A stretch of DNA of 64,000 bases. Origin: Octopus sinensis. Lineage: Eukaryota. This document shows positions 5,955 to 57,800 of the stretch, piece by piece. Location of the stretch: positions 70,866,001 to 70,930,000 of the forward strand of contig NC_042999.1 of NCBI RefSeq assembly GCF_006345805.1, in the 5' to 3' direction. The notes beneath the pieces are model-generated. The model was not told where the DNA came from, did no database searches, and worked only from the letters and a program-made list of their open reading frames with translations. Within the stretch, counting starts at the first letter, position 1, and each line of letters opens with the position of its first letter. The position numbers and the translations under genes are program-made.

Positions 5955-6365
5955 TCAAATTTTGCTGTAAGGCCTGAGATTTTTGGAGAAGGAGCTATTC
6001 GATCACATCGATCCCAGTGCTCAGCTGGTACTTAATTTTATCGACCCCAAAAAGATGAAAGGCAAGGTCGACCTCGGTGGAATTTGAACTCAACGAACGT
6101 AAAAATGGAAAAAAGAAATACCGCTAAACGATTTTACCTGCCCGCTGCCTTAATGATGATGATGATGATAATCCTTTCTACTATAGGCACAAGGCCTGGA
6201 ATTTTGGGGGAGGGGACTAGTCGATTACACTGACCCTAGTGTTTCGTTGGTACTTAATTTATCGACCCCGAAAGGATGAAAGGCAAAGTCGACCTCGGCG
6301 TAATTTGAACTCAGAACGTAAACATAGACAGAAGAAATGCTGCTAAACGATTTTACTCTACCGCA
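5955..6365 (-). mobile_element. two tandem SINE-2 copies (about 5955-6150 and 6175-6365)
   Basis: each has GGCC..AATTT..GG..GTCGATTACA..GGTACTTAATTT.ATCGACCCC.AAAGATGAAAGGCAA.GTCGACCTCGG..AATTTGAACTC. Confidence 0.85.
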
Positions 6366-8375: not shown

Positions 8376-8594
8376 AATTAAGGACTGAACACGAAAAGTG
8401 GACAGTCAACATGCTAGATATAGACGTCAAATCGCCATTCACCACAAAAGATTATGTTCTCAGATCAAACTCAGCACAAAACAACTGTTTTTGTGCTGAG
8501 TTTGATCTGAGAACATAATCTTTTGTGGTGAATGGCGATTTGACGTCTATATCTAGCATGTTGACTGTCCACTTTTCGTGTTCAGTCCTTAATT
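8376..8594. repeat. perfect 106-bp-arm palindrome (foldback/MITE-like) between (TA)n tracts
   Basis: 8376-8481 is the exact reverse complement of 8489-8594; 7-nt loop. Confidence 0.9.
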
Positions 8595-8624
<30 letters not shown>

Positions 8625-8625
<1 letters not shown>

Positions 8626-9017
8626 TCTTTTTACTCTGTTACTCTTTTACTTGTTTCAGTCATTTGACTGCGGCCATGCTGGAGCACCGCCTTTTAGTCG
8701 AGCAAATCGACCCCAGGACTTATTCTTTGTAAGCCCAGTACTTATTCTATTAGTCTCTTTTGCTGAACCGCTAAGTTACGGGGACGTAAACACACCAGCA
8801 TCGGTTGTCAAGCAATGGTGGGGGGACAAACACAGACACGCAAACATATACACACATACATATACATACATATATACGACGGGCTTCTTCCAGTTTCCGT
8901 CTACCAAATCCACTCACAAGGCATTGGTCGGCCCGAGGCTATAGTAGAAGACACTTGCCCAAGGTGCCACGCAGTGGGAATGAACCCGGAACCATGTGGT
9001 TGGTTAGCAAGCTACTT
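8625..9017 (-). mobile_element. SINE-1 body, split by Tx1 insertions; its 5' head continues at 15956-15977
   Basis: matches the intact copy at 40298-40713 up to ..GCAAGCTACTT, and the expected ACCACACAGCCACTCCT reappears only at 15956. Confidence 0.92.
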
Positions 9018-9249
9018 TATTTCATATAATTTGCCATTTAGGCATTTACAAAGAGGGGACAAACAAGGACAGACAAATATAAAGAGTGAAGTAGCTTAAC
9101 ACAGTTAAAATTTTCGAATGAAATTACGGATAAGATTATAAACAATGAATTTTACGAAGACAATGTTTAAAAATATTACTTAATGATCATGTCGAAGGAC
9201 GGACACCCAGCCATCCGGGTAGAACCTTTACTTTTTGATCCGGTCACAC

Positions 9250-12200
9250 TTACCTGGTGCCAAACATACCCAGCTTGCATGCCACAGGCTTCCATCTTTT
9301 CACAAACATATCTCGTGACAGACACCTCTTCTCCAGCCTGATTTAGCTACTGAGGTGGTAACTAAAAAGGTTAATCAACCCCTGGCCGGAGACAAAGGTG
9401 CCTGTCACTATACCTTTCGTACGCGTCTCCCATACTGTTTCTTTCAGTATGGCTACTACACAGAAAAAACAAGCCTTTCTTTCCCTGTTAAGGAAAGGAG
9501 GCGGCACAATCTCGATGATAGACTCAGCTGATAGCTGTACTCTTCCCATCACTGACAACAGTTGTTCGGCAAAAGCTATCAGTCCCGATAACTCCGGACA
9601 CTTCACGAATGCGTGCAAGACGGTTTCCCTATCCTGCTCACATCGCGGGCATGTCGGCGAGATGGCACTTCCGTGCCTTGACAGCTTGTCGCGAACAGGT
9701 AAAGCCGCACAGAAACACTGCCAGGTAATTATCCAGATACCTCGGCCCGAAATCCTCCGGAACAGGTTGGCCAACTGATTTTCATCGTAGCCCAGGGTCT
9801 CCCCCAAGGCGTCTTCGGACTTAACCTCCACTAACCCGCTATAGAAATCCGTGGTGGAACTCCTGTTGCCGGCGTTGCCCACCCGAGAGAGTAGCTGGAG
9901 CGCCTGACGGCACTCCAAATGCCATTCACCCAGTTTAGGTCTCCGCTTGATCCATGCACCAATGTCCGTTAGGGATGTTAACTGGGGAAGGTAGAACCGG
10001 ACGTGCGGTGACCACACCTGCTCTCCATCCAGGTAAAGCCAGAGGTGCCTCAACCTGAACGCGAGTTTTCGCATCCTCAGCCAAGGCATCCCTAGCCCAC
10101 CCTTTAGCGGTTTCTGGCAGCAGACAGAGCGCTTTACAAGTGGTTTTCCTCCTTTCCACAAAAAGCGGAAAAGGATTCTCTCCAACTTGTTCATCCACAA
10201 ATCGGGGCAAAGCACCACGGTCAGACGGTGGGTGATTACTGATGCTATAAACATCTGCACCACCTCCGCCTTCCCTAGCAGGGATAACGCCCGCCCAGAC
10301 CAGGTCTGGGTTAGAGCGGTCACCTTGCTGGCCACCTCACTCCAATTTTTCTCAATCTGGAGGTCTGGCCCGAACCAGACTCCGAGCAGCTTAACAGGAC
10401 CTTCCGTCCAACGCCCTACGACGTTATTGGACGGCATCGGCTTGCCCCTCCAGGTGCCGAGTTGCAAACCGACCGACTTGTCCTTGTTAACCTTTGCTCC
10501 TGCCACCGCCTCGTAGCTTTTGATGGCCTCTTCCACCACTGGAAGCTGGCCTTCGTCTGCCACGGTGATGGAGGTGTCATCCGCATACGCCGTAGCTCAT
10601 CTTCCACACCATAGATCATGCGGCGCTCCCCCTAGTCCCTCCAACTTCCGCAGCAAAGGCTCAAGACCCAATACGTATAGGAGCGAGGACAGGGGACACC
10701 CCTGACGAACTGAACGCTCGATCCTGAACGGCTTCGAAAAGAAACCGTTCACCTTGACTACAGACTCGATGTCGCTATACAAAGCAGCGATCCAACCTCG
10801 AAAGGTCGGGCCTAGGCCAGCCTCTCCGAGGACCGCCGCCAAGTACCGATGGTCGACCCTATGAAATGCTTTGGACTGGTCTAAATGTACCAGTGCTCCC
10901 CCTGCGCCAGAAAGCTTCCCCACCCTCTCTAAGGAGTAGCGTATAAGGTGGAGATTATCGTGGATCGTTCTGCCAGGGATAGCGCACGTTTGCGCTTCCC
11001 CGACAAGTTTGTCCACGACCCGCGCAAACCTTTTTGCTAGCACCTTGGCCAGAATCTTTAACTCTGTGTTCAACAGAGTTATGGGCCTGAAGTTCCCTAT
11101 CTCGCCCCCCTTGCTCGGGTTCTTCCTGATCAACGTCACAACACCCCGGCTCGCAGACTTGGGAATTCTCCCATTCTGCTGCCAGTTGGCGTAGACGCTA
11201 GCCATCAGGTGCCCGAACAAGTCTGGCATACTTTTATAAAATTCATAGGGCAGACCATCGAGACCCGGCGACTTCTCCCCGGGGCACTTGCCCAACACCT
11301 CGATTACTTCCTCGGCTGTGATTGGCCCTTCACAGCACTCAGCCTCTCGTATCGAGAGACGCGGGCCACCAGACAGGAAGTCCCTAAGGGCCTCACCATG
11401 ATCCAGCGTCCCGCACCTCCCGAACAACTCGGCGAAGTGCTTGTGAAGTGCCTCACACATCTCGTCTCGCTTCTTGACCGTGCATTCGTTTTCATCAACA
11501 AGAGACCCAATTGTGGCATCGTTGCCACGCTGTGTTTCTATCGTACGGGCCCATCCGGCAACATTAATTCCATCACGGCCCAATGCTCGTACTTTAACCC
11601 GAACTCTACATCCCTCATGTTTGGTTTTGAGGTGACGGTCTAATGCCGTTCTCGCCGCTAAAATGTGAGATGCAGAGCCCAACCTCAACGCCTCCTCCAA
11701 GTTCTTAACTAGTTGCCCTTCTATTCTAGCCCTATCTAGTCTTAGTTGTTTACTAAATCTAATGGACTCGAATCGAATGGCTCTTTTGAGGGCGAACAAC
11801 CACCGGTTATTAACCACGGCTCCGGTTAACGCCCTCTGCACTAACTCCTTAATCCGGCTACGGTATGCCTCGCGAGTCAAAATAGACTTGTTCAGCTTCC
11901 AGTAGCCGGTTCCTATCTTAAGTGTGCTATCTATGTCCAGTCTACACTTGACCATTCTATGGTCAGTATAGGGCACCTGGACGAGCTGTGGACAACTAAA
12001 ACTAGACTTATCTCTAGTTCTTATCACTATCCTGTCTAGATAAGACTTGAACCTTCCGTCACCACTCATCCAGGTGCACTCTGGGACGTTCGGATGGTCA
12101 AATCTGTAACGATCTGCCAGCTGAAACCGCTTAAGCAGATCCACGAGACGTGAGTTCACTTTCCTATAGATCGAGCCAACGCTATCGATGTGTACGTCAA

Positions 12201-12636
12201 CGATAGCATTAAAGTCCCCTAATATCACTAAAGTCTTCGACGTCACGAGAACGCCCTCTAGGCGCCGATAAAAATCAGTTTGGAAACCTCTAGCACAAGA
12301 TGCATAGAGTCCGATCAACCTGAAGGCCTTACTGCTGTATGTCACATCAAGGACGACCAGCCCACCTTCTGGGTCCACATAGACTGTACTTGTCTGCAGA
12401 GTCAAGTCTTTACGGATCAGTACCACTACACCCTCTCTCCCTCCGGTCTGGCCAGGAGACATGATTTTCTCGTAGCCATTCAGGAGAGGTGAGAAGGTTT
12501 GTAGGCTGTCCAGCTTGGTCTCTGTAGCAACCATCACATGTATATCATGTGATCTGAGGTCGTCGAGGAAACAAGCCTGCTTCCACTTCGAACTCAGACC
12601 ACGCACATTTAAACAACCAAGGTTAAGAGAAGCCAT
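9250..12636 (-). pseudogene. ORF2 of element A: AP endonuclease + reverse transcriptase + C-terminal Cys-rich domain, one frame with in-frame stops at 10597-10599 and 9343-9345
   Basis: APE motifs LNVRGL, VATET, ILGDFN, SYLDRI, YTDH; RT motifs KSPGLDG, FRPITLLN, DQSKAF, VRQGCPLS, then *ATAYADD in the same frame; C-terminal CPRCEQDRETVLHAFVKC; read-through of the 9343 stop gives IRLEKRCLSRDMFVKRW, matching copy C. Confidence 0.9.
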
Positions 12637-12653
12637 TACAAAAAGTAAAAGTT

Positions 12654-14068
12654 CTACTTACATTTCGTTGGAGAGGTTGGGGCTGACCTCACCACACATT
12701 TGTGGGCCCCTTCTTTCTCCTCCTTTTTCAGATAGTCCGGCAAGTTCGCGATACGCCGGATGGCGTTTGGGTGTCTGTCTTTTAATTGTTTGAACGTTGT
12801 TTCCGCAATCCACGCATATCTTTCGTTTCGATCTTTGTGTTTGTTGTACAGTCTTGCTGTGTGATGCGGAACCACAATATCGTTTATATATTTGTTTTGT
12901 GTATCATATTCAATTAATATGAGTTCATTTTTTTGTCTTCTTTTTCTGGGCCAGTTGGGCGGGATTTTTTTTTTGGTGTCTGTGGTGTGTCTTTGTTTTT
13001 ATTATTTTTTGTAGGGGATATGGACGGGGATGATGCACGAATTCTTTTACGAATTGTTGTAAATCCCCCCTCTGATACCTCCATGGTATCGTCTGGGGTA
13101 GCAATATTTTGTTCAGTAGGCGCCGCAGTTTTTAAGGGGGTGGGAGGTTTTAATAATGTAGGGGTTTGTGAGTGCAAGGGCTGGGTTTTTTTGTCAGTTT
13201 GTTTTGGGGTTGGCACCGTAACAGCAGGAGTGGGACTTTTTGTTTTTGTAAGGGTAGGTGAGTTTGCAAGGGTAGGGATTTTTTTATTATCTGAGGGGCC
13301 TGGTGTCTGCGGTTTCTTTTGCTTGTCTGGACGGTCTACACGAATGTGGCCCTTTTTGCCGCAGGCGTAACAGGTGGGTTTTCGGCCTTCGACCTGTACC
13401 CTGAGGGCCACATTCTCGCCCACGAGCACCCTCTCAGAAAGGAGCTGCAGGTCCTCCGGTGTTCCTTGAATTATTATATTAATGTCTCGCCCAAGCCAAT
13501 ATTGAGGGGCAGAGCATGTTACCTGTAATATTTTAATTTTGTCCGTCCTTTTATATAACAGGGCGGCCACTACCTCTACCGGATCTACTTCCGGCGGTGC
13601 TTCTGCAATCTTGACCCGGGACGTCCTGCGTCCCCTATAGGTTGGCAGAAGTACCACCTCCTTGGTTTTTAGGGGATTCACAGAATGCTCGCGGGCCACC
13701 TCTTCCTCCGAGAAGCGGACCTTCACAGTGCCATATGCCCGTCCCCTGGCGACGTACACAATGTCCTTTCAAATCGGGGACAGGCATTTCTCGATAGTAT
13801 TCTTTTCAAAGTGTTTGAACCTTCTGCTTTGTGGACAGAAGGTTTTAAACACTACGGTCCGCTTCTCGGTCTCCACGATACTGGCGGAGGGTGATATTTT
13901 AACATCACCGCCCTCCTCTTTCATTCTTTTAAATAGCTCGACGAGCTGATTGACATTGATGTCAATGTTCTCGGTTGCCACTGCGGCTACCGCAGAAATT
14001 TTTTTACTACAGTTATCAACATTGCTCTCCTCAAGAGCACTATTTTCGTGAATAATCTCAACAGACAT
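12654..14068 (-). pseudogene. ORF1 (gag-like nucleic-acid-binding protein) of element A, with in-frame TGA at 13769-13771 and a probable 1-bp indel in the A7 run near 12930
   Basis: track ORFs 13769-14098 and 12914-13759 are in the same frame (..CLSPI*KDIVYVARG); knuckle CYACGKKGHIRVDR (CX2CX4HX4 with final C changed to R); the frame of ORF 12654-12875 is open upstream to the A-run and ends 18 nt before the ORF2 ATG. Confidence 0.75.
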
Positions 14069-14510
14069 TATTCTGTTGATATTAGTAATAGACAACAAAA
14101 AAATTACAAATATTAGTTTCCCACAAAAATGGGAAACCTATAAAAAGTTTTTCTTCCAAAGCAGTTCAATGAGTGGTAAAAAGCAGTTCAAAAATTTCAA
14201 TTCCCACCCCCATTCAGGGGAGGGGCACGAAAATAGTCTGGCAAGACTATATACAGTCACGTAGATAAAAAGTCACAATGGCTAACAGTTCAACAGTAAC
14301 AAATTATCCAATTATTCCTCGGTAAAACCGGGGAACAAGACAGTTCGACAACGTTCAAAAACAAATTTTCAGTAGTAAAATTCAACAAGTTCCAGATGGT
14401 ACGAAGTAATATTAACAACACAGCAAAACTCTTACTGGGAAGAAAACGCGTCCAAACCGTAGTAAGGTAAGCAAAGTCACTTTTCAGTCAGTGAGGTTAG
14501 CAAGCTACTT

Positions 14511-15944
14511 TATTTTATCCGATTTGCCATAAAGGCAGTACACAGATGGGACAATACAACACATGTGGGGACATATAACAATTAAAAAATGAAATATGAT
14601 ATAATGAATGAACATGAAAATGCACATGAAGAACAAATTAAAATATGATAATATGAATGATATCTGAAAATGATATTATGAAGAGTGTGCTACTCACCCC
14701 ACACTGAGTAACACAACTCGCTGTCTCTGGGTCCTGAGTCCTTTTTCTCTTTTCGTTCAGTCCTGTCACTTGATGGTAACCTCTCCGTCATGCATTCATA
14801 ACCTTTTTTTCCGGGAGGGGGGTCTTCTAAATTTTGTGGTGTCTGTTCTTTTTTTTCTTTTTTTCTTGAGAGGAAATGGTGTGGGTGGGTTTGGTGTCTG
14901 TATGTGGGTCTGAGTGGTCTTGGGTGGGATGGGGTTGGACTGGGGTGCCACATCATAATCAGTGTCTTTTCTTTTTTTCTCTTTCTTCTTGTGCGCTCTG
15001 CAACTTTCCATTCCTCCTTTTCATCGCTTCCTTCGTCTATTTTTCTTTTCCCTCTCTTTTCTCTTCTGTCTCCGCAACCACATCCTCGGCCGTAGTCTTT
15101 CGTAGAGGGCAGTATGCTCTAATGTGGCCCTTTTGGCCACATTTAAAACAACGTGGTACTCTGCCCTCTACCCACACCCTCAGCACGATTTCCCCCAGCG
15201 TCACAGTTTCTGCCAAGTTCTCAAGTTGTTCCTCCTCCGTCTGAATGATTAATTCGAGCGTCCTTCCTTTGCACCCTCCTTCTTCTGTTTCTGTGGATTG
15301 GATGACAGCCACCTTCTCCTGGCTTCCAACAAGGACAGCTGCCGCTACCCAAGCCCCTTCTACATCCGGCGGAATTGCTTCTACCCTCACTTTAGAAGTT
15401 TTTCTTCCAAGGTATTTGGGCAGAAGTACTACCTCCTCCGTTTTCACCACCACACTTGCCAGCCTCATTGCCTCTTCAGCTGTCCTAAATTGGACGACCA
15501 TTGTTCCGTATCTTTTTCCTTTTGTGATGTATGTGATTTCTTTTGACCTCTCTCTTAGCGCTCTTTCTGTATCCGCTTCCACCTGTTCAGCCCTTCTTCC
15601 TTTTAAAGAGAACACCTTATAGGTGATAGTCTTCCTTTCCATCTTCTCCATAATTCCTTGGGGGGGGGGGCGACAGTCTTACGTCCCCTCCCACCTTCTG
15701 TAGCATCATGCCATGGTTTTTCATACCAGCCAAGTCCAGCTCCTTTCGTCTCTTCTCAGTGACCTCTGCAAAACTCCTGGTCTTTTCTAGCATACTGTCC
15801 ATTGCTATGACCGCCCTCACGGGCTCCTCCTCTGAAGACAACTCAGACCCGGTAAGGTCTGAGTACATTGTCTTACCGTAGCAACAACACCGACGTCCGA
15901 CTCGCACACAAACGACAAACCAAATGCACTATGGGTAACCGGAT
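14511..15944 (-). mobile_element. ORF1-only non-autonomous Tx1-related element B (HAL1-like), 1434 bp
   Basis: ORF1 homologue with intact CFKCGQKGHIRAYC; no APE/RT sequence; 3' 45 nt similar to element A; TSD GCAAGCTACTT (14500-14510) / GCAAGCTATTT (15945-15955). Confidence 0.85.
14690..15868 (-). pseudogene. ORF1 of element B, frameshifted at G11 (15660-15670) and at an A-run near 15040
   Basis: GGDVRLSPP/MEKMERKTITYK aligns with GGDVKISPSASIVETEKRTVVFK of A; shared blocks YGT, KTxEVVLLPxYxGRxTS, LRVxVEGRxPxC; about 40% identity by hand alignment. Confidence 0.75.
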
Positions 15945-15955
15945 GCAAGCTATTT

Positions 15956-15976
15956 ACCATACAGCCACTCCTGTGG

Positions 15977-15977
<1 letters not shown>
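15956..15977 (-). mobile_element. displaced 5' head (A-box) of the SINE-1 copy at 8625-9017
   Basis: ACCATACAGCCACTCCTG matches the intact head ACCACACAGCCACTCCT at 40699-40715. Confidence 0.85.
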
Positions 15978-16019
<42 letters not shown>

Positions 16020-16209
16020 TAAATTTTTCCGTAATGAGATAAAAAACCAAGGCTGTGCTGATATATGACCTACGTTAGACCCCTTATTCATATAATCACT
16101 GAACATGGAACTCGACTATGGTCTATTTATAGCACTTATTCAACATTACCTGACACCTTTGGGTCTCACTGACACCTTTGGGTCTCACTGACACCATTAC
16201 TTCTCATAA

Positions 16210-31917: not shown

Positions 31918-32421
31918 GGGTGGTGAGCTGGCAGAATCGTTAGCACACTGGACATATGTTTAGTGACATAATTAATAAACTAACTTCAGTATACTGCTAG
32001 TACATATTTTAGCGAAATATTGCTGTCACTTATTATTTTAGTGATAATAGTAATCTTGGTTTCAAATTTTAGCACAAGGCCAGCAATTTTGAGAGAGGGG
32101 CTAAGTCGATTACATCGACCCCAACTCTTAACTAGTACTCATTTTCTCGACTCTGAAAAGATGAAAGGCAAAGTCGACCTCGTCTTTATGTCCTGAGTTC
32201 AAATTTCGCCGAGGTCGACTTTGCCTTTCATCTTTTCAGAGTCGAGAAAATGAGTACTAGTTAAGAGCTGGGGTCGATGTAATGACTTAGCCCCTCTCTC
32301 AAAATTGCTGGCCTTGTGCTAAAATTTGAAACCAAGATTACTATTATCACTAAAATAATAAGTGACAGCAATATTTCGCTAAAATATGTACTAGCAGTAT
32401 ACTGAAGTTAGTTTATTAATT
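31918..32421. repeat. SINE-2 copy with a 213-bp inverted duplication (SINE 3' half plus flank)
   Basis: 31970-32182 is the reverse complement of 32210-32421 (1 mismatch, 1 indel); SINE head at 31918-31968. Confidence 0.9.
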
Positions 32422-35510: not shown

Positions 35511-36309
35511 CAAATGTCAAGGTATATCGAACGAATGAGGAAGAGAGCATTGAATACGCTTGTAGAGAATATGGTTTATTAAAACTTTAATCTCGCGGCT
35601 TAGTTATCAAACTCCTGCAATCGCCAGGCGAGAACCGTTACAGCTGGCTGCCCATTTATATGCGGTCTTTTGTGTGTGTATGTTGATTGATTTGTTTTTT
35701 GCGTCTTGGTTTTCTATTATTTTCGTGTCTATTGATTAGCGGTTGGCACTTAAGATTTAACTTCACTGAATTTTTCGGTTACTGAGTGCTTAAGTATTTA
35801 TATTCGTTCTATTATTTTTTAATCATTTTTTATTATTTTAAAAATTATTTCTGAGTTTATGAAAATATTTGCTTACATAATTATACGTTAGTGAATTCAT
35901 CTGATAATCTTATCAAAGCTATTTATTGTTTATAATCGATGTGTGTGTGTATGTGTATGTGCTGTGAAATCTACTTCATTCATTAGAAATAGTTTATAAG
36001 AAGAAATTTGTTTTTTCTTTTGTATTTTATTTCATGGGTGCTGATATTAGGTTTTTATGGTTGAGTGACTTTTGTTCGTGGTTAGATTTGTCAATACCGT
36101 CATGTTTATTTACGTGTGTCTATGAGGGTGTTCGATTTTTGTTTCGATGAAAATTAAAAAGTTTCATGACTTGTTTTCGTGTTTATTTTGTAATTTCATG
36201 TGATCTCATCTATTAATTATTTATGCTTCTTTGAGTTTCTTGAAGAGTTTGTGTGTGTATGTGTGTGTATTTGTGTGTGTGCTATATATCTTATGTTTTA
36301 TCTTTTCTC

Positions 36310-36676
36310 TTACTTCTTTCAGTCATTGGACTGTGGCCATGCTGGAGCGCTTAAAGAATTTTAGTCGAATTAATCGATCCCAGGACTTATTCTTCGTAAG
36401 CCTGATACTTACTCTATCGTTAACTTTTGTCGAACCGCTAGTTTACGGGGACGTAAACACACCAATATTGGTTATCAAGAGATGGTGGGGAGGGGGAAGG
36501 AGGTAATCGCAGACACAAAGACATACGCAGAAATATACGGGTTTCTTTCAGTTTCCGTCTACTAAATCCATTCATAAGGCTTCGGTCGACACCGAGGCTA
36601 TAGTAGAAGACACTTACCCAAGGTGCCACGCTGTGGGACTGAATCCGGAACCATGTGGTTGGGAAGCAAGCTTCTT
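36310..36676 (-). mobile_element. SINE-1 body truncated at the Tx1 target site
   Basis: SINE-1 sequence ends ..GGGAAGCAAGCTTCTT and is followed directly by a Tx1 3' end. Confidence 0.9.
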
Positions 36677-37184
36677 TATTTCATAAGTTGGCTATGGAAG
36701 CCGTACATAGATGGACAAACAAGGACAAACAGACATAGAGGGTGAAGAAGTTGCTTATTACGAATGAAAGAGTTTCGAATGATAAAATATAAATGTCATG
36801 CTGTTAAAAACTATATCTTTTTTTCCTTTTAAAAATTTCAATATAAACTTAATGATCATTGCAAATTTTGCAGTGTGTGACTGAAGGAAAGGCATCCAAC
36901 CGCCAGGTTCGAACCTTTACTTTTCCTTCTGGCCCCACTTGCCTGGTTCCAGTCACTCGCAGCTTGTTCACTACTTGCTTCCATCTTTTCACAAACATAT
37001 CCTGTGACAGGTATCTCTTCTCCAGCCTGATCTTGCTATCGCGGTGGTAACTAAAGAAGTTAACCAACCCTTGGCCGGAGACGAATGTACCCGCCACTAT
37101 ACCTCTTACACGCGTCTTTCATGCTGTTTCTTTCAGTATGGTTACTACGCAGAAAAAACACAAGCCTTCCTTTCCTTGCTAAGG
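36677..37184 (-). mobile_element. 5'-truncated Tx1 copy C (ORF2 C-terminus plus 3' UTR)
   Basis: GTFVSGQGLVNFFSYHRDSKIRLEKRYLSQDMFVKRW aligns to element A; about 83% nucleotide identity over a 139-bp hand-aligned segment. Confidence 0.9.
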
Positions 37185-40715: not shown

Positions 40716-41349
40716 AAATATATAGCCGTCAATTTACAGTTTATACTTACATAGACACATCCATACAAGCTTGCTTGTATGCATTCGTAAATACATGTAT
40801 ACATGCATAAATGCATACAAACATGCGTAGCTTGTCAGTACTCTCGATTGTCTTCTCATTACAGCCGCTGTCACTCCTGCTCTCAGAACGTAGTGTTAGT
40901 GGATATGGAGACTATGAATCTCATTTTTAATACGCAGAAAGATTGAAGCTGTTAGACCAAGTATTAACCACATCAGAAAGAAATATGATCTCATTGCCTA
41001 ATATTCTACATACATTGAAAACGAATTTGCTGATTCCTATCCTGAAGTTTTTGTGCCATGAACATGAAATTAAATATAAACGGCTTGACAATATAACCTT
41101 TATATTTAGATGAGAATTACAAGTATCTTGCACAGGATGGCTATGTCAGGTACAATGACCATTTATAGAAAAATGTACGCTCACACACACACGCACGCAC
41201 ACAACTTTGTTTCTTTTGCAATCTTGCCACCAAACAGGTGGCTGGTCAAAATAAATCGAGAAGTTTATTTTTGTTTGAGACAAGTGAATGTTGTTCATTT
41301 TATTTTACTTAATTAAAACTGCGACGTGTGTACAATAGAAAATATTGAT

Positions 41350-41752
41350 TTCAAATTTTGACACAAGGCTAGCAATATCGAGTGTAGAGGTAAGTCAATT
41401 AAATCAACGCCAGTACTCAACTGATACTTATTTTATCGACCCTGAAAGGATGAAAGGCAAAATGGACCTCGGCAAAATTTTGAACTCAGAACGCAAAGAC
41501 GGACGAAATGCCGCTTGCCTAGAGTAGAAAAGAATATGGCGGTGGGCTGGCAGAATTTTAGTTTGCCGGGTGAAATGTTTAGCGGCATTTCGTCCGTCTT
41601 TGCGTTCTGAGTTCAAAATTTTTGGGGTGTGGGTACAGTGATTAGATCGACCCCAGTACGCAGTTGGTACTTAATTTATTGACCCCGAAAGGATGAAAGG
41701 CAAAGTCGACCTCGGCGGAATTTGAACTCAGAACGTATAGAGACGAAATACT
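41350..41752. mobile_element. two tandem minus-strand SINE-2 copies with an internal inversion and a 42-bp inverted duplication
   Basis: 41474-41515 is the exact reverse complement of 41581-41622; the spacer holds an inverted SINE head and tail. Confidence 0.8.
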
Positions 41753-42001
41753 GCATGGCACGAGTACACACACTCATACAAGCATTAGTAAAAATGTGAG
41801 CATACGCACACTCGAGGTTAGGCGCACTCATGATTACAAAGCGAGTCAGATATTTAGTAGGTGTTTAGAAGAACGGGGAGGTTTAAAGTAAATTTAAGTC
41901 ATCCATACCTTAAAGTAAAATAAAATAAAATTACACTAAGTTAACGGTTACTCAAAATTCAGTCTCACTGCATTGTGCGAAAGTACATTCATATGCGTGT
42001 A

Positions 42002-57579: not shown

Positions 57580-57800
57580 CATCATCATTATTATTAAGGT
57601 AGCGTGCTGTCTGAATCGTTGGTTCGTTGGACAAAATGCTTAACGGCATTTCGCTCGTCGCTATGTTTTTGAGTTCAAATTCTGCAGAGGTCGGCTTTGC
57701 CTTTCATCCTTTCGGGATCGACAAAATAAGCGCGAATCAAGTACTGCTGTCGATGTATTCAATTAACGTCTTTCCCCCAAATTTCAGGCCTTTTGCTAAA
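57167..57800 (+). mobile_element. two SINE-2 copies (57167-57285 and 57597-57800)
   Basis: GGCAGCGAGCTGGCAGAATCGTTAGC..TTCTGAGTTCAAATTCCGCCGAG. Confidence 0.8.

Follow-up and report, generated by a model that had tools for sequence, protein, structure and literature searches.

In the long interspersed elements (LINEs) UnaL2, R2 and SART1, the 3' tail of the element RNA is recognised by the protein that contains the reverse transcriptase (RT). The textbook view of L1-type enzymes is that they depend on poly(A) and act promiscuously, and the mammalian HAL1 ('half-L1') elements, which carry only the first open reading frame (ORF1), rely on poly(A) and on L1 in trans. Within the L1 clade, stringent LINEs with covarying 3' stem-loops have been described from plants and green algae (LINE1-1_ZM and L1-1_CR; PMC3472496), and the Tx1 group includes Tx1L, Keno, Kibi, Koshi and Tx1-Mar (PMC4494074). 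L1-Tx1 elements are annotated as recently active in Octopus vulgaris (PMC13282606), and in octopus they have been reported as a RepeatMasker class only (PMC8967140, PMC13282606). Here we analyse a stretch of 64,000 nucleotides from Octopus sinensis (contig NC_042999.1, positions 70,866,001 to 70,930,000; hereafter the window), which carries three insertions on its minus strand: the LINE A (9018..14494), the ORF1-only non-autonomous element B (14511..15940) and C, an old 5'-truncated LINE copy (36677..37184). All three carry close to their 3' end a hairpin, called hp1 in A, B, C and their relatives, which is a conserved, covarying 3'-terminal RNA element. Moreover, LINEs of this clade insert site-specifically and form tandem arrays.

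Read on the minus strand, hp1 is UGCC-UAAAU-GGCA in A (9044 to 9032), UGCC-UUUAU-GGCA in B (14537 to 14525) and GGCU-UCCAU-AGCC in C (36702 to 36690), with two pairs switched in C relative to A and B. This is the 4-bp stem with a 5-nt loop that an earlier note on this DNA had described. The RNA ends after the hairpins are ..AUGAAAUA in A (9018), ..AUAAAAUA in B (14511) and ..AUGAAAUA in C (36677), at a distance of 14, 14 and 13 nt, respectively, and the three elements share an upstream block that reads UGUCC..UCU.UGUA; both the spacing of 13-14 nt and the block agree with what had been noted. The 3'-terminal module of A (9018..9062, minus strand) is composed of GUCCCCUCUUUGUA, hp1 and the 14-nt spacer to the end AUGAAAUA; it is devoid of poly(A) and scores 57 bits with the covariance model R1.

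For each of the three families, the tails of 30 genomic copies were fetched from the 2.72-Gb genome (90 in total). In A, hp1 is identical in 30/30 young copies (0 changes in 390 sites, compared to 97 in 4590 further upstream in the 3' untranslated region (UTR); p = 8e-4). In B, the hairpin varies far less than the sequence around it (8 changes in 390 sites versus 76 in 420 in the spacer just downstream) and is kept in at least four sublineages that differ in their 3' spacers. The difference is modest in C (32 changes in 390 sites versus 634 in 4650 comparison sites); the switched C-type stem is the consensus of its family, 23 of the 30 copies being fully paired. When ten tails were folded, hp1 was present in the minimum free energy and centroid structures of all ten. 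An outer helix around hp1 (UGUAA/UUAUA in A; AUCUG/CGGAU in the window copy of B) was dropped, as it is unconserved in the sublineage consensus sequences.

Further octopod lineages were taken from tandem arrays and their flanks, located by the target motif described below and not by the hairpin, and the last ~52 nt of 15 octopod lineages were aligned with MAFFT without any fitting of structure. In this alignment, 85% of the cells are paired versus 71% in shuffles, and 0/500 shuffles reach the observed value; the lineages are akin, so the shuffle counts overstate independence and are not to be read as probabilities. Double changes occur at all four pairs, and controls slid off the hairpin are only 20-48% paired. 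The RNAalifold consensus is the hp1 helix and no other, both here and in an alignment of 23 lineages that combines the octopod lineages with distant ORF2 relatives and further Argonauta tails, Argonauta hians being the source of the closest named protein relatives. In this second alignment, whose windows carry the caveat of being centred on the hairpin, 88% of the cells are paired versus 67% in shuffles.

The outer pair occurs as UA, AU, GC, GU and CG and the third pair as CG, GC, UA and UG, with one switch each at the second and fourth pairs; we estimate at least eight separate double changes. Three lineages contain G-U pairs, three in all, which can form in the sense RNA but not in its complement. 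The last base of the loop is an invariant U in the 23 lineages and the base after the loop is G in 22/23; when the hairpins are read lineage by lineage, the base before the terminal U is a purine, giving a loop of the form Y-N-N-R-U followed by G. Among the octopod lineages, hp1 reads UGUC-UAUAU-GACA in lineage D, UGCC-CUAAGU-GGCA in lineage E and GCUC-CUUGU-GGGC in lineage G; it is identical to that of B in lineage I (L109), has a bulged stem in lineage F and pairs poorly in lineage H. The Argonauta locus L134 contributes AGCC-AGGU-GGCU and GGCC-CUUGU-GGCU. Rfam gave no match at E <= 0.1 in window positions 8500-16200 and only microsatellite-driven microRNA noise on L134, and ARAGORN yielded nothing relevant.

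In distant full-length ORF2 relatives (35-41% identity, from ENA assemblies), which often stand in tandem arrays, a C-rich tract is followed by a hairpin of the same dimensions, 4 bp and 5 nt (AGGC-CUUGU-GCCU, UGGC-CAUGU-GCCA and CGGC-UAUAU-GCCG). Before the GAAAUAAA end, hp1 is succeeded in these relatives by another hairpin, of 5-8 bp and likewise covarying (L257 6060-6105; L259 6145-6182; L261 5725-5761; L264; L262/L263), which is absent from the octopod lineages.

The 3' end of these elements is fixed to the nucleotide. Similarity stops at ..(G/A)AAATA in all 90 copies of the A, B and C families, without poly(A), and what follows is nearly always the target motif AAG(T/A)AGCTTGCT(T/A)(A/C)CC. 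Beyond this motif lies either the rest of an abundant tRNA-like short interspersed element (SINE), entered from the same base, or the 5' end of another LINE; the SINE begins at the same base after 28/30 A copies. Pairwise identity among 28 young A copies is 98.3% over the final 130 nt of the LINE and 87.1% over the adjoining 130 nt of the SINE, indicating independent insertions into old SINE copies. In two 5'-truncated copies, L008 and L021, the SINE head adjoins the upstream end and there is a target-derived 16-bp duplication, which in L008 reads AAGTAGCA(T/C)GCTTACC on both sides, and an off-target insertion (L013) duplicates AAGTAGCTTTGATAGC. At the 5' ends, the SINE head was found upstream in 34/43 fetched cases and the 3' end of another LINE in 5/43; for A, the SINE head is directly upstream in 8/9 fetched copies. 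The fact that A and C both run into a SINE had raised the suspicion of a false end, with the SINE being part of the LINE or the product of 3' transduction. This was rejected on the basis of the SINE divergence (87% versus 98%), the target-derived duplications around 5'-truncated copies and the SINE heads upstream of the 5' ends. Our search of the literature found no published description of a SINE-head-specific LINE in octopus.

The canonical head of the SINE is GGAGTGGCTGTGTGGTAAGTAGCTTGCTTACCAACCACATGG. A, B, C and several other LINE families (window 8608-15978, minus strand; loci L001-L133) use one insertion point in this head, GGT^AAGTAGCTTGCTTACC^AACC, where insertions are accompanied by a 16-bp duplication and often form tandem LINE-LINE arrays. 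A metagenome pattern scan for more LINE/SINE junctions returned chance 16-mers only. The variant ..GCTAACC is found directly upstream in all eight full-length A copies (L125-L133), most SINE heads having GCTTACC, and part of the target is present once more at some B 5' junctions (L095-L097), which read ..GCTAACC AGCTTGCTTCC GGTTACCC. Flanking target that is co-transcribed and carried along may be the cause, or else a preference for one SINE subfamily. One B-family copy (L076) has four units of the terminal AAATA ahead of the target motif, a pattern reminiscent of RT slipping as synthesis starts; a similar extra unit is seen in L087.

In the window, the SINE head (15978-15941, ..GGAGTGGCTGTATGGTAAATAGCTTGCATCC), which adjoins B on its upstream side, is followed on the minus strand by B (1.43 kb), a 16-bp repeat at the tandem junction (14510-14495), A (5.48 kb), a second 16-bp repeat (9017-9002, AAGTAGCTTGCTAACC) and the remainder of the SINE (8608..9001, limits approximate). 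B and A stand as a tandem array within one interrupted SINE. C, only 0.5 kb long, retains the last 42 codons of ORF2 and the 3' UTR, and downstream of it come the target motif AAGAAGCTTGCTTCCC and the rest of a SINE (36306..36676, minus strand).

The tail is not restricted to autonomous elements. B carries a homologue of ORF1 (15037-15678, minus strand; 45% identity to ORF1 of A). The length of its family is constant, 1.37-1.47 kb in at least 12 loci (paired 5' and 3' matches), and in essentially all of its loci ORF1 is found some 350 nt before the tail, without ORF2. The B loci (L061-L090) form a diversified ORF1-only family of at least four sublineages, with 68-94% amino acid identity of ORF1 among copies, and B resembles a site-specific 'half-LINE'. 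A 6.2-kb autonomous B-like element, suggested at first by coordinates on contig C1, is unsupported, ORF1 being directly upstream of every B-family tail examined. B has the same target site and the same 16-bp duplication as A, and the two have only the ~50-nt tail in sequence in common. It had been proposed that the hairpin explains how B is mobilised. The sharing of tail, target and duplication agrees with this; A may be the driver, but only ~50 nt are common to both and the hairpin of lineage I is identical to that of B.

In Argonauta, a covariance model built from octopod tails and applied to locus L266 detected 15 tails in 20.8 kb, which end the LINE and at least two families of tRNA-type SINEs, one of about 155 nt in tandem copies. 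These tail-bearing SINEs stand head-to-tail (L266 4880-5360 and elsewhere; L134 5900-7013, minus strand). CTATT(T/A) follows nearly every Argonauta SINE tail; this may mean that the true end is 5-6 nt beyond the point assigned, or it may reflect a target preference. Taken together, a compensatory 3'-terminal stem-loop, a tail common to non-autonomous partners and a fixed end without dependence on poly(A) are the features of stringent-type elements. The sharing of the tail, the strongest of the clues to function, is a signature of stringent 3'-end recognition.

The best explanation of these observations, which we regard as probable, is that the retrotransposition machinery, probably the ORF2 protein (ORF2p), binds the hairpin tail and that a nick in the head of the SINE then primes reverse transcription precisely from ..AAAUA. 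Here, hp1 is the conserved core of a 45-50-nt 3' tail, which the machinery, most likely ORF2p, would bind on the RNA. Target-primed reverse transcription would begin exactly at ..AAAUA-3', with a nick in the head of the abundant SINE (bottom strand ..GCTACTT^) as primer, and a second nick 16 bp downstream would give rise to the AAGTAGCTTGCT(T/A)ACC duplication, the positions of both nicks being deduced from the duplications. A specific SINE target lies immediately beyond the element end, so base pairing between read-through RNA and the nicked DNA of this target may contribute to setting where synthesis begins; the first two target bases complete AAUAAA. Any RNA that bears the tail would be copied in trans, namely the ORF1-only B here and the tRNA-type SINEs in Argonauta. 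The earlier note had presented the hairpin as the cis-signal for ORF2p: a conserved, covarying 3' element, a precise end without poly(A) and shared tails all speak for a cis-signal, and that ORF2p is the binder we infer.

If the hairpin had no structural function, it would be a small inherited palindrome in a tail conserved for sequence-level reasons, its covariation arising from few events and from the choice of alignment. The stem indeed has only 4 bp and weak z-scores, adjacent unpaired positions are conserved too, and related sequences can beat every shuffle. We nevertheless judge this very improbable, given that six different stem sequences pair at the same position with a double change at every pair, that slid controls collapse to 20-48%, that RNAalifold gives only the hp1 helix and that the terminal U of the loop is invariant. 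Alternatively, the hairpin could be a signal for 3'-end formation or processing (termination, cleavage or stabilisation) acting with the AAUAAA across or next to the end of the element, rather than a recognition site for RT. The ends are very precise, and most lineages finish in AAUAAA or a near variant, which in A, B and C is completed by the target's first two bases. We consider this unlikely: the copies have neither poly(A) nor transduced flank, which argues that the start of reverse transcription is set internally; the same tail is found on tRNA-type SINEs, presumably transcribed by RNA polymerase III; and AAUAAA is not universal, some Argonauta tails ending in AGAGAAAU. It should be noted that AAUAAA spans the LINE/target junction (..GAAAUA/AAG..; window 9014-9021, minus strand, and equivalents), where it is a candidate polyadenylation signal that would exist only after correct insertion.

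A somewhat better chance, though still a small one, is given to the idea that hp1 is a packaging or binding site for the ORF1 protein (ORF1p), a CCHC-knuckle protein, with ORF2p recruited indirectly. What B has retained is exactly an intact ORF1 homologue and the tail, at the regular distance already described. The Argonauta SINEs, however, bear the tail without ORF1, even if ORF1p could act in trans, and in studied stringent LINEs recognition of the 3' tail is the task of the protein with the RT domain, as stated in general terms in PMC3472496.

Several observations also weigh against recognition of the hairpin by the reverse transcription machinery as set out above. The folding z-scores of the ten tails range from -2.6 to +0.1 relative to shuffles, the energy gain of a 4-bp stem being marginal or absent; because the thermodynamics are weak, the case for the hairpin rests on comparative evidence. 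That evidence is itself affected by the relatedness of the lineages, which inflates the apparent independence of the shuffle counts, and by the centring of the 23-lineage windows. The octopod-built model gave no significant detection on the distant tails (L261, E = 2.2), so that the homology of the distant hp1 rests on position and shape. The flanks are conserved as well (upstream UGU, RUG where loop and stem meet, and the terminal AAAUA), and recognition may therefore depend on sequence as much as on shape. Finally, broken or shifted stems occur in single copies (lineages H and F, copy D2 of lineage D and the Argonauta tail Ar4), which may be decayed copies.

The protein encoded by A places the element in the L1 superclade. 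At about 5.4 kb, full-length A is represented by at least 12 of the best 40 genomic copies (paired 5' and 3' matches). In the window, ORF1 (12914-13768, minus strand) encodes a CCHC knuckle and ORF2 (9343-12657, minus strand) 1097 aa with APE, RT and zf-RVT domains; ORF2 is open over its 1097 codons apart from a single in-frame stop at 10594-10596 (minus strand), immediately before the YADD catalytic motif. In a comparison of ORF2 with the PDB, the best end-to-end match was human L1 ORF2p over endonuclease and RT (E = 5e-48), R2 proteins matched in RT only, and no R1 or TRAS endonuclease match was obtained. ORF2 has the layout of the L1 superclade, collinear with L1 ORF2p, with an N-terminal APE, an RT and a C-terminal Cys-rich domain (Pfam zf-RVT), and is not of the L2/CR1-type RT lineage. 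As it aligns end to end with human L1 ORF2p, A is assigned to the L1 superclade and not to L2, and the comparison with L2-clade elements made in the earlier note holds as a functional analogy only. The octopus LINEs also display the Tx1-group trait of sequence-specific insertion into a repeated target; the clade resembles Tx1 elements in domain layout and target use and may belong to that group. A 466-aa fragment of this clade (P0004) is deposited as a 'zinc-binding domain-containing protein' on a 1.8-kb contig of a Herbaspirillum sp. metagenome-assembled genome; this is almost certainly contamination of a metagenome bin by cephalopod DNA.

Two further observations concern other repeats. An internal segment of the SINE, GTGTCTGTGTTTGTCCCCCC (window ~8790-8830, minus strand), resembles GTCTGTCCTTGTTTGTCCCC of the LINE tail (9045-9075, minus strand) and has after it a hairpin of 5 bp (canonical form CAUCG-CUUGACAAC-CGAUG; window copy CAUUG..CGAUG); this segment may be an old LINE-derived module or a chance likeness. 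An unrelated short repeat of about 130-160 nt is present in many copies and both orientations (41341-41766, 32052-32339, 454-610, 6001-6343 and 57655-57761), one copy of which (41348-41398) gives a weak, non-significant match to the tail model (E = 0.24).

These findings describe an animal L1-superclade lineage that bears the marks of choosing its template stringently, namely an exact end, a very small covarying hairpin and tails also present on SINEs and on an ORF1-only parasite, and that is at the same time strict in its choice of the DNA target. Both choices, of RNA template and of DNA site, can be read from the sequence and are testable with small defined elements. In the annotation of octopus repeats, one targeted mechanism, and not chance nesting, accounts for many of the places where a LINE stands next to a SINE or where LINEs form tandem arrays. 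A bolder proposal, which we advance tentatively and are more inclined to doubt than to assert, is that the 4-bp, Y-N-N-R-U hairpin with about 15 nt on each side is the complete cis recognition element of a cephalopod clade of site-specific L1/Tx1-like LINEs, specialised on the head of the host's most abundant SINE and supporting layered parasites (ORF1-only elements and SINEs). If true, this signal would be among the smallest defined for recognition by RT, and an L1-type enzyme would be seen to work with a 'tail + target' module that is compact and separable.

Stringent recognition itself is known; what is new is an animal (octopod), L1-type, site-specific LINE clade with a minimal hairpin of the stringent type. 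As in eel UnaL2 and zebrafish ZfL2 (L2 clade) and silkworm SART1 (R1 clade), a short conserved hairpin lies near the RNA 3' end, is maintained by compensatory changes, is followed by a short terminal motif and belongs to a tail shared with non-autonomous partners. The octopus element differs from these three in that its ORF2 is L1-like and not of the L2 or R1 type, its stem has only 4 bp, it lacks a terminal repeat or poly(A), and its insertion is site-specific; the loop of UnaL2, GGAUA, also differs from the octopus Y-N-N-R-U. As an ORF1-only derivative amplified as a family of its own, B recalls HAL1, from which it is distinguished by a specific tail and a specific target. LINE1-1_ZM and L1-1_CR likewise belong to the L1 superclade and have a compensatory 3'-end stem-loop common to SINEs (PMC3472496), whereas they are plant and algal elements, not target-specific and mostly poly(A)-ended, the octopus elements being of animal origin and without poly(A). 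The Tx1 group resembles the octopus clade in its L1-related ORF2 with APE, RT and a C-terminal zinc-binding domain, in its strict targets, which include other transposons, in its tandem or nested arrays and in having non-autonomous elements with a shared target, such as SINEU with Tx1-Mar (PMC4494074). The octopus elements, in contrast, go into the head of a tRNA-like SINE and duplicate 16 bp there, and their tails, unlike SINEU, do not end in poly(A).
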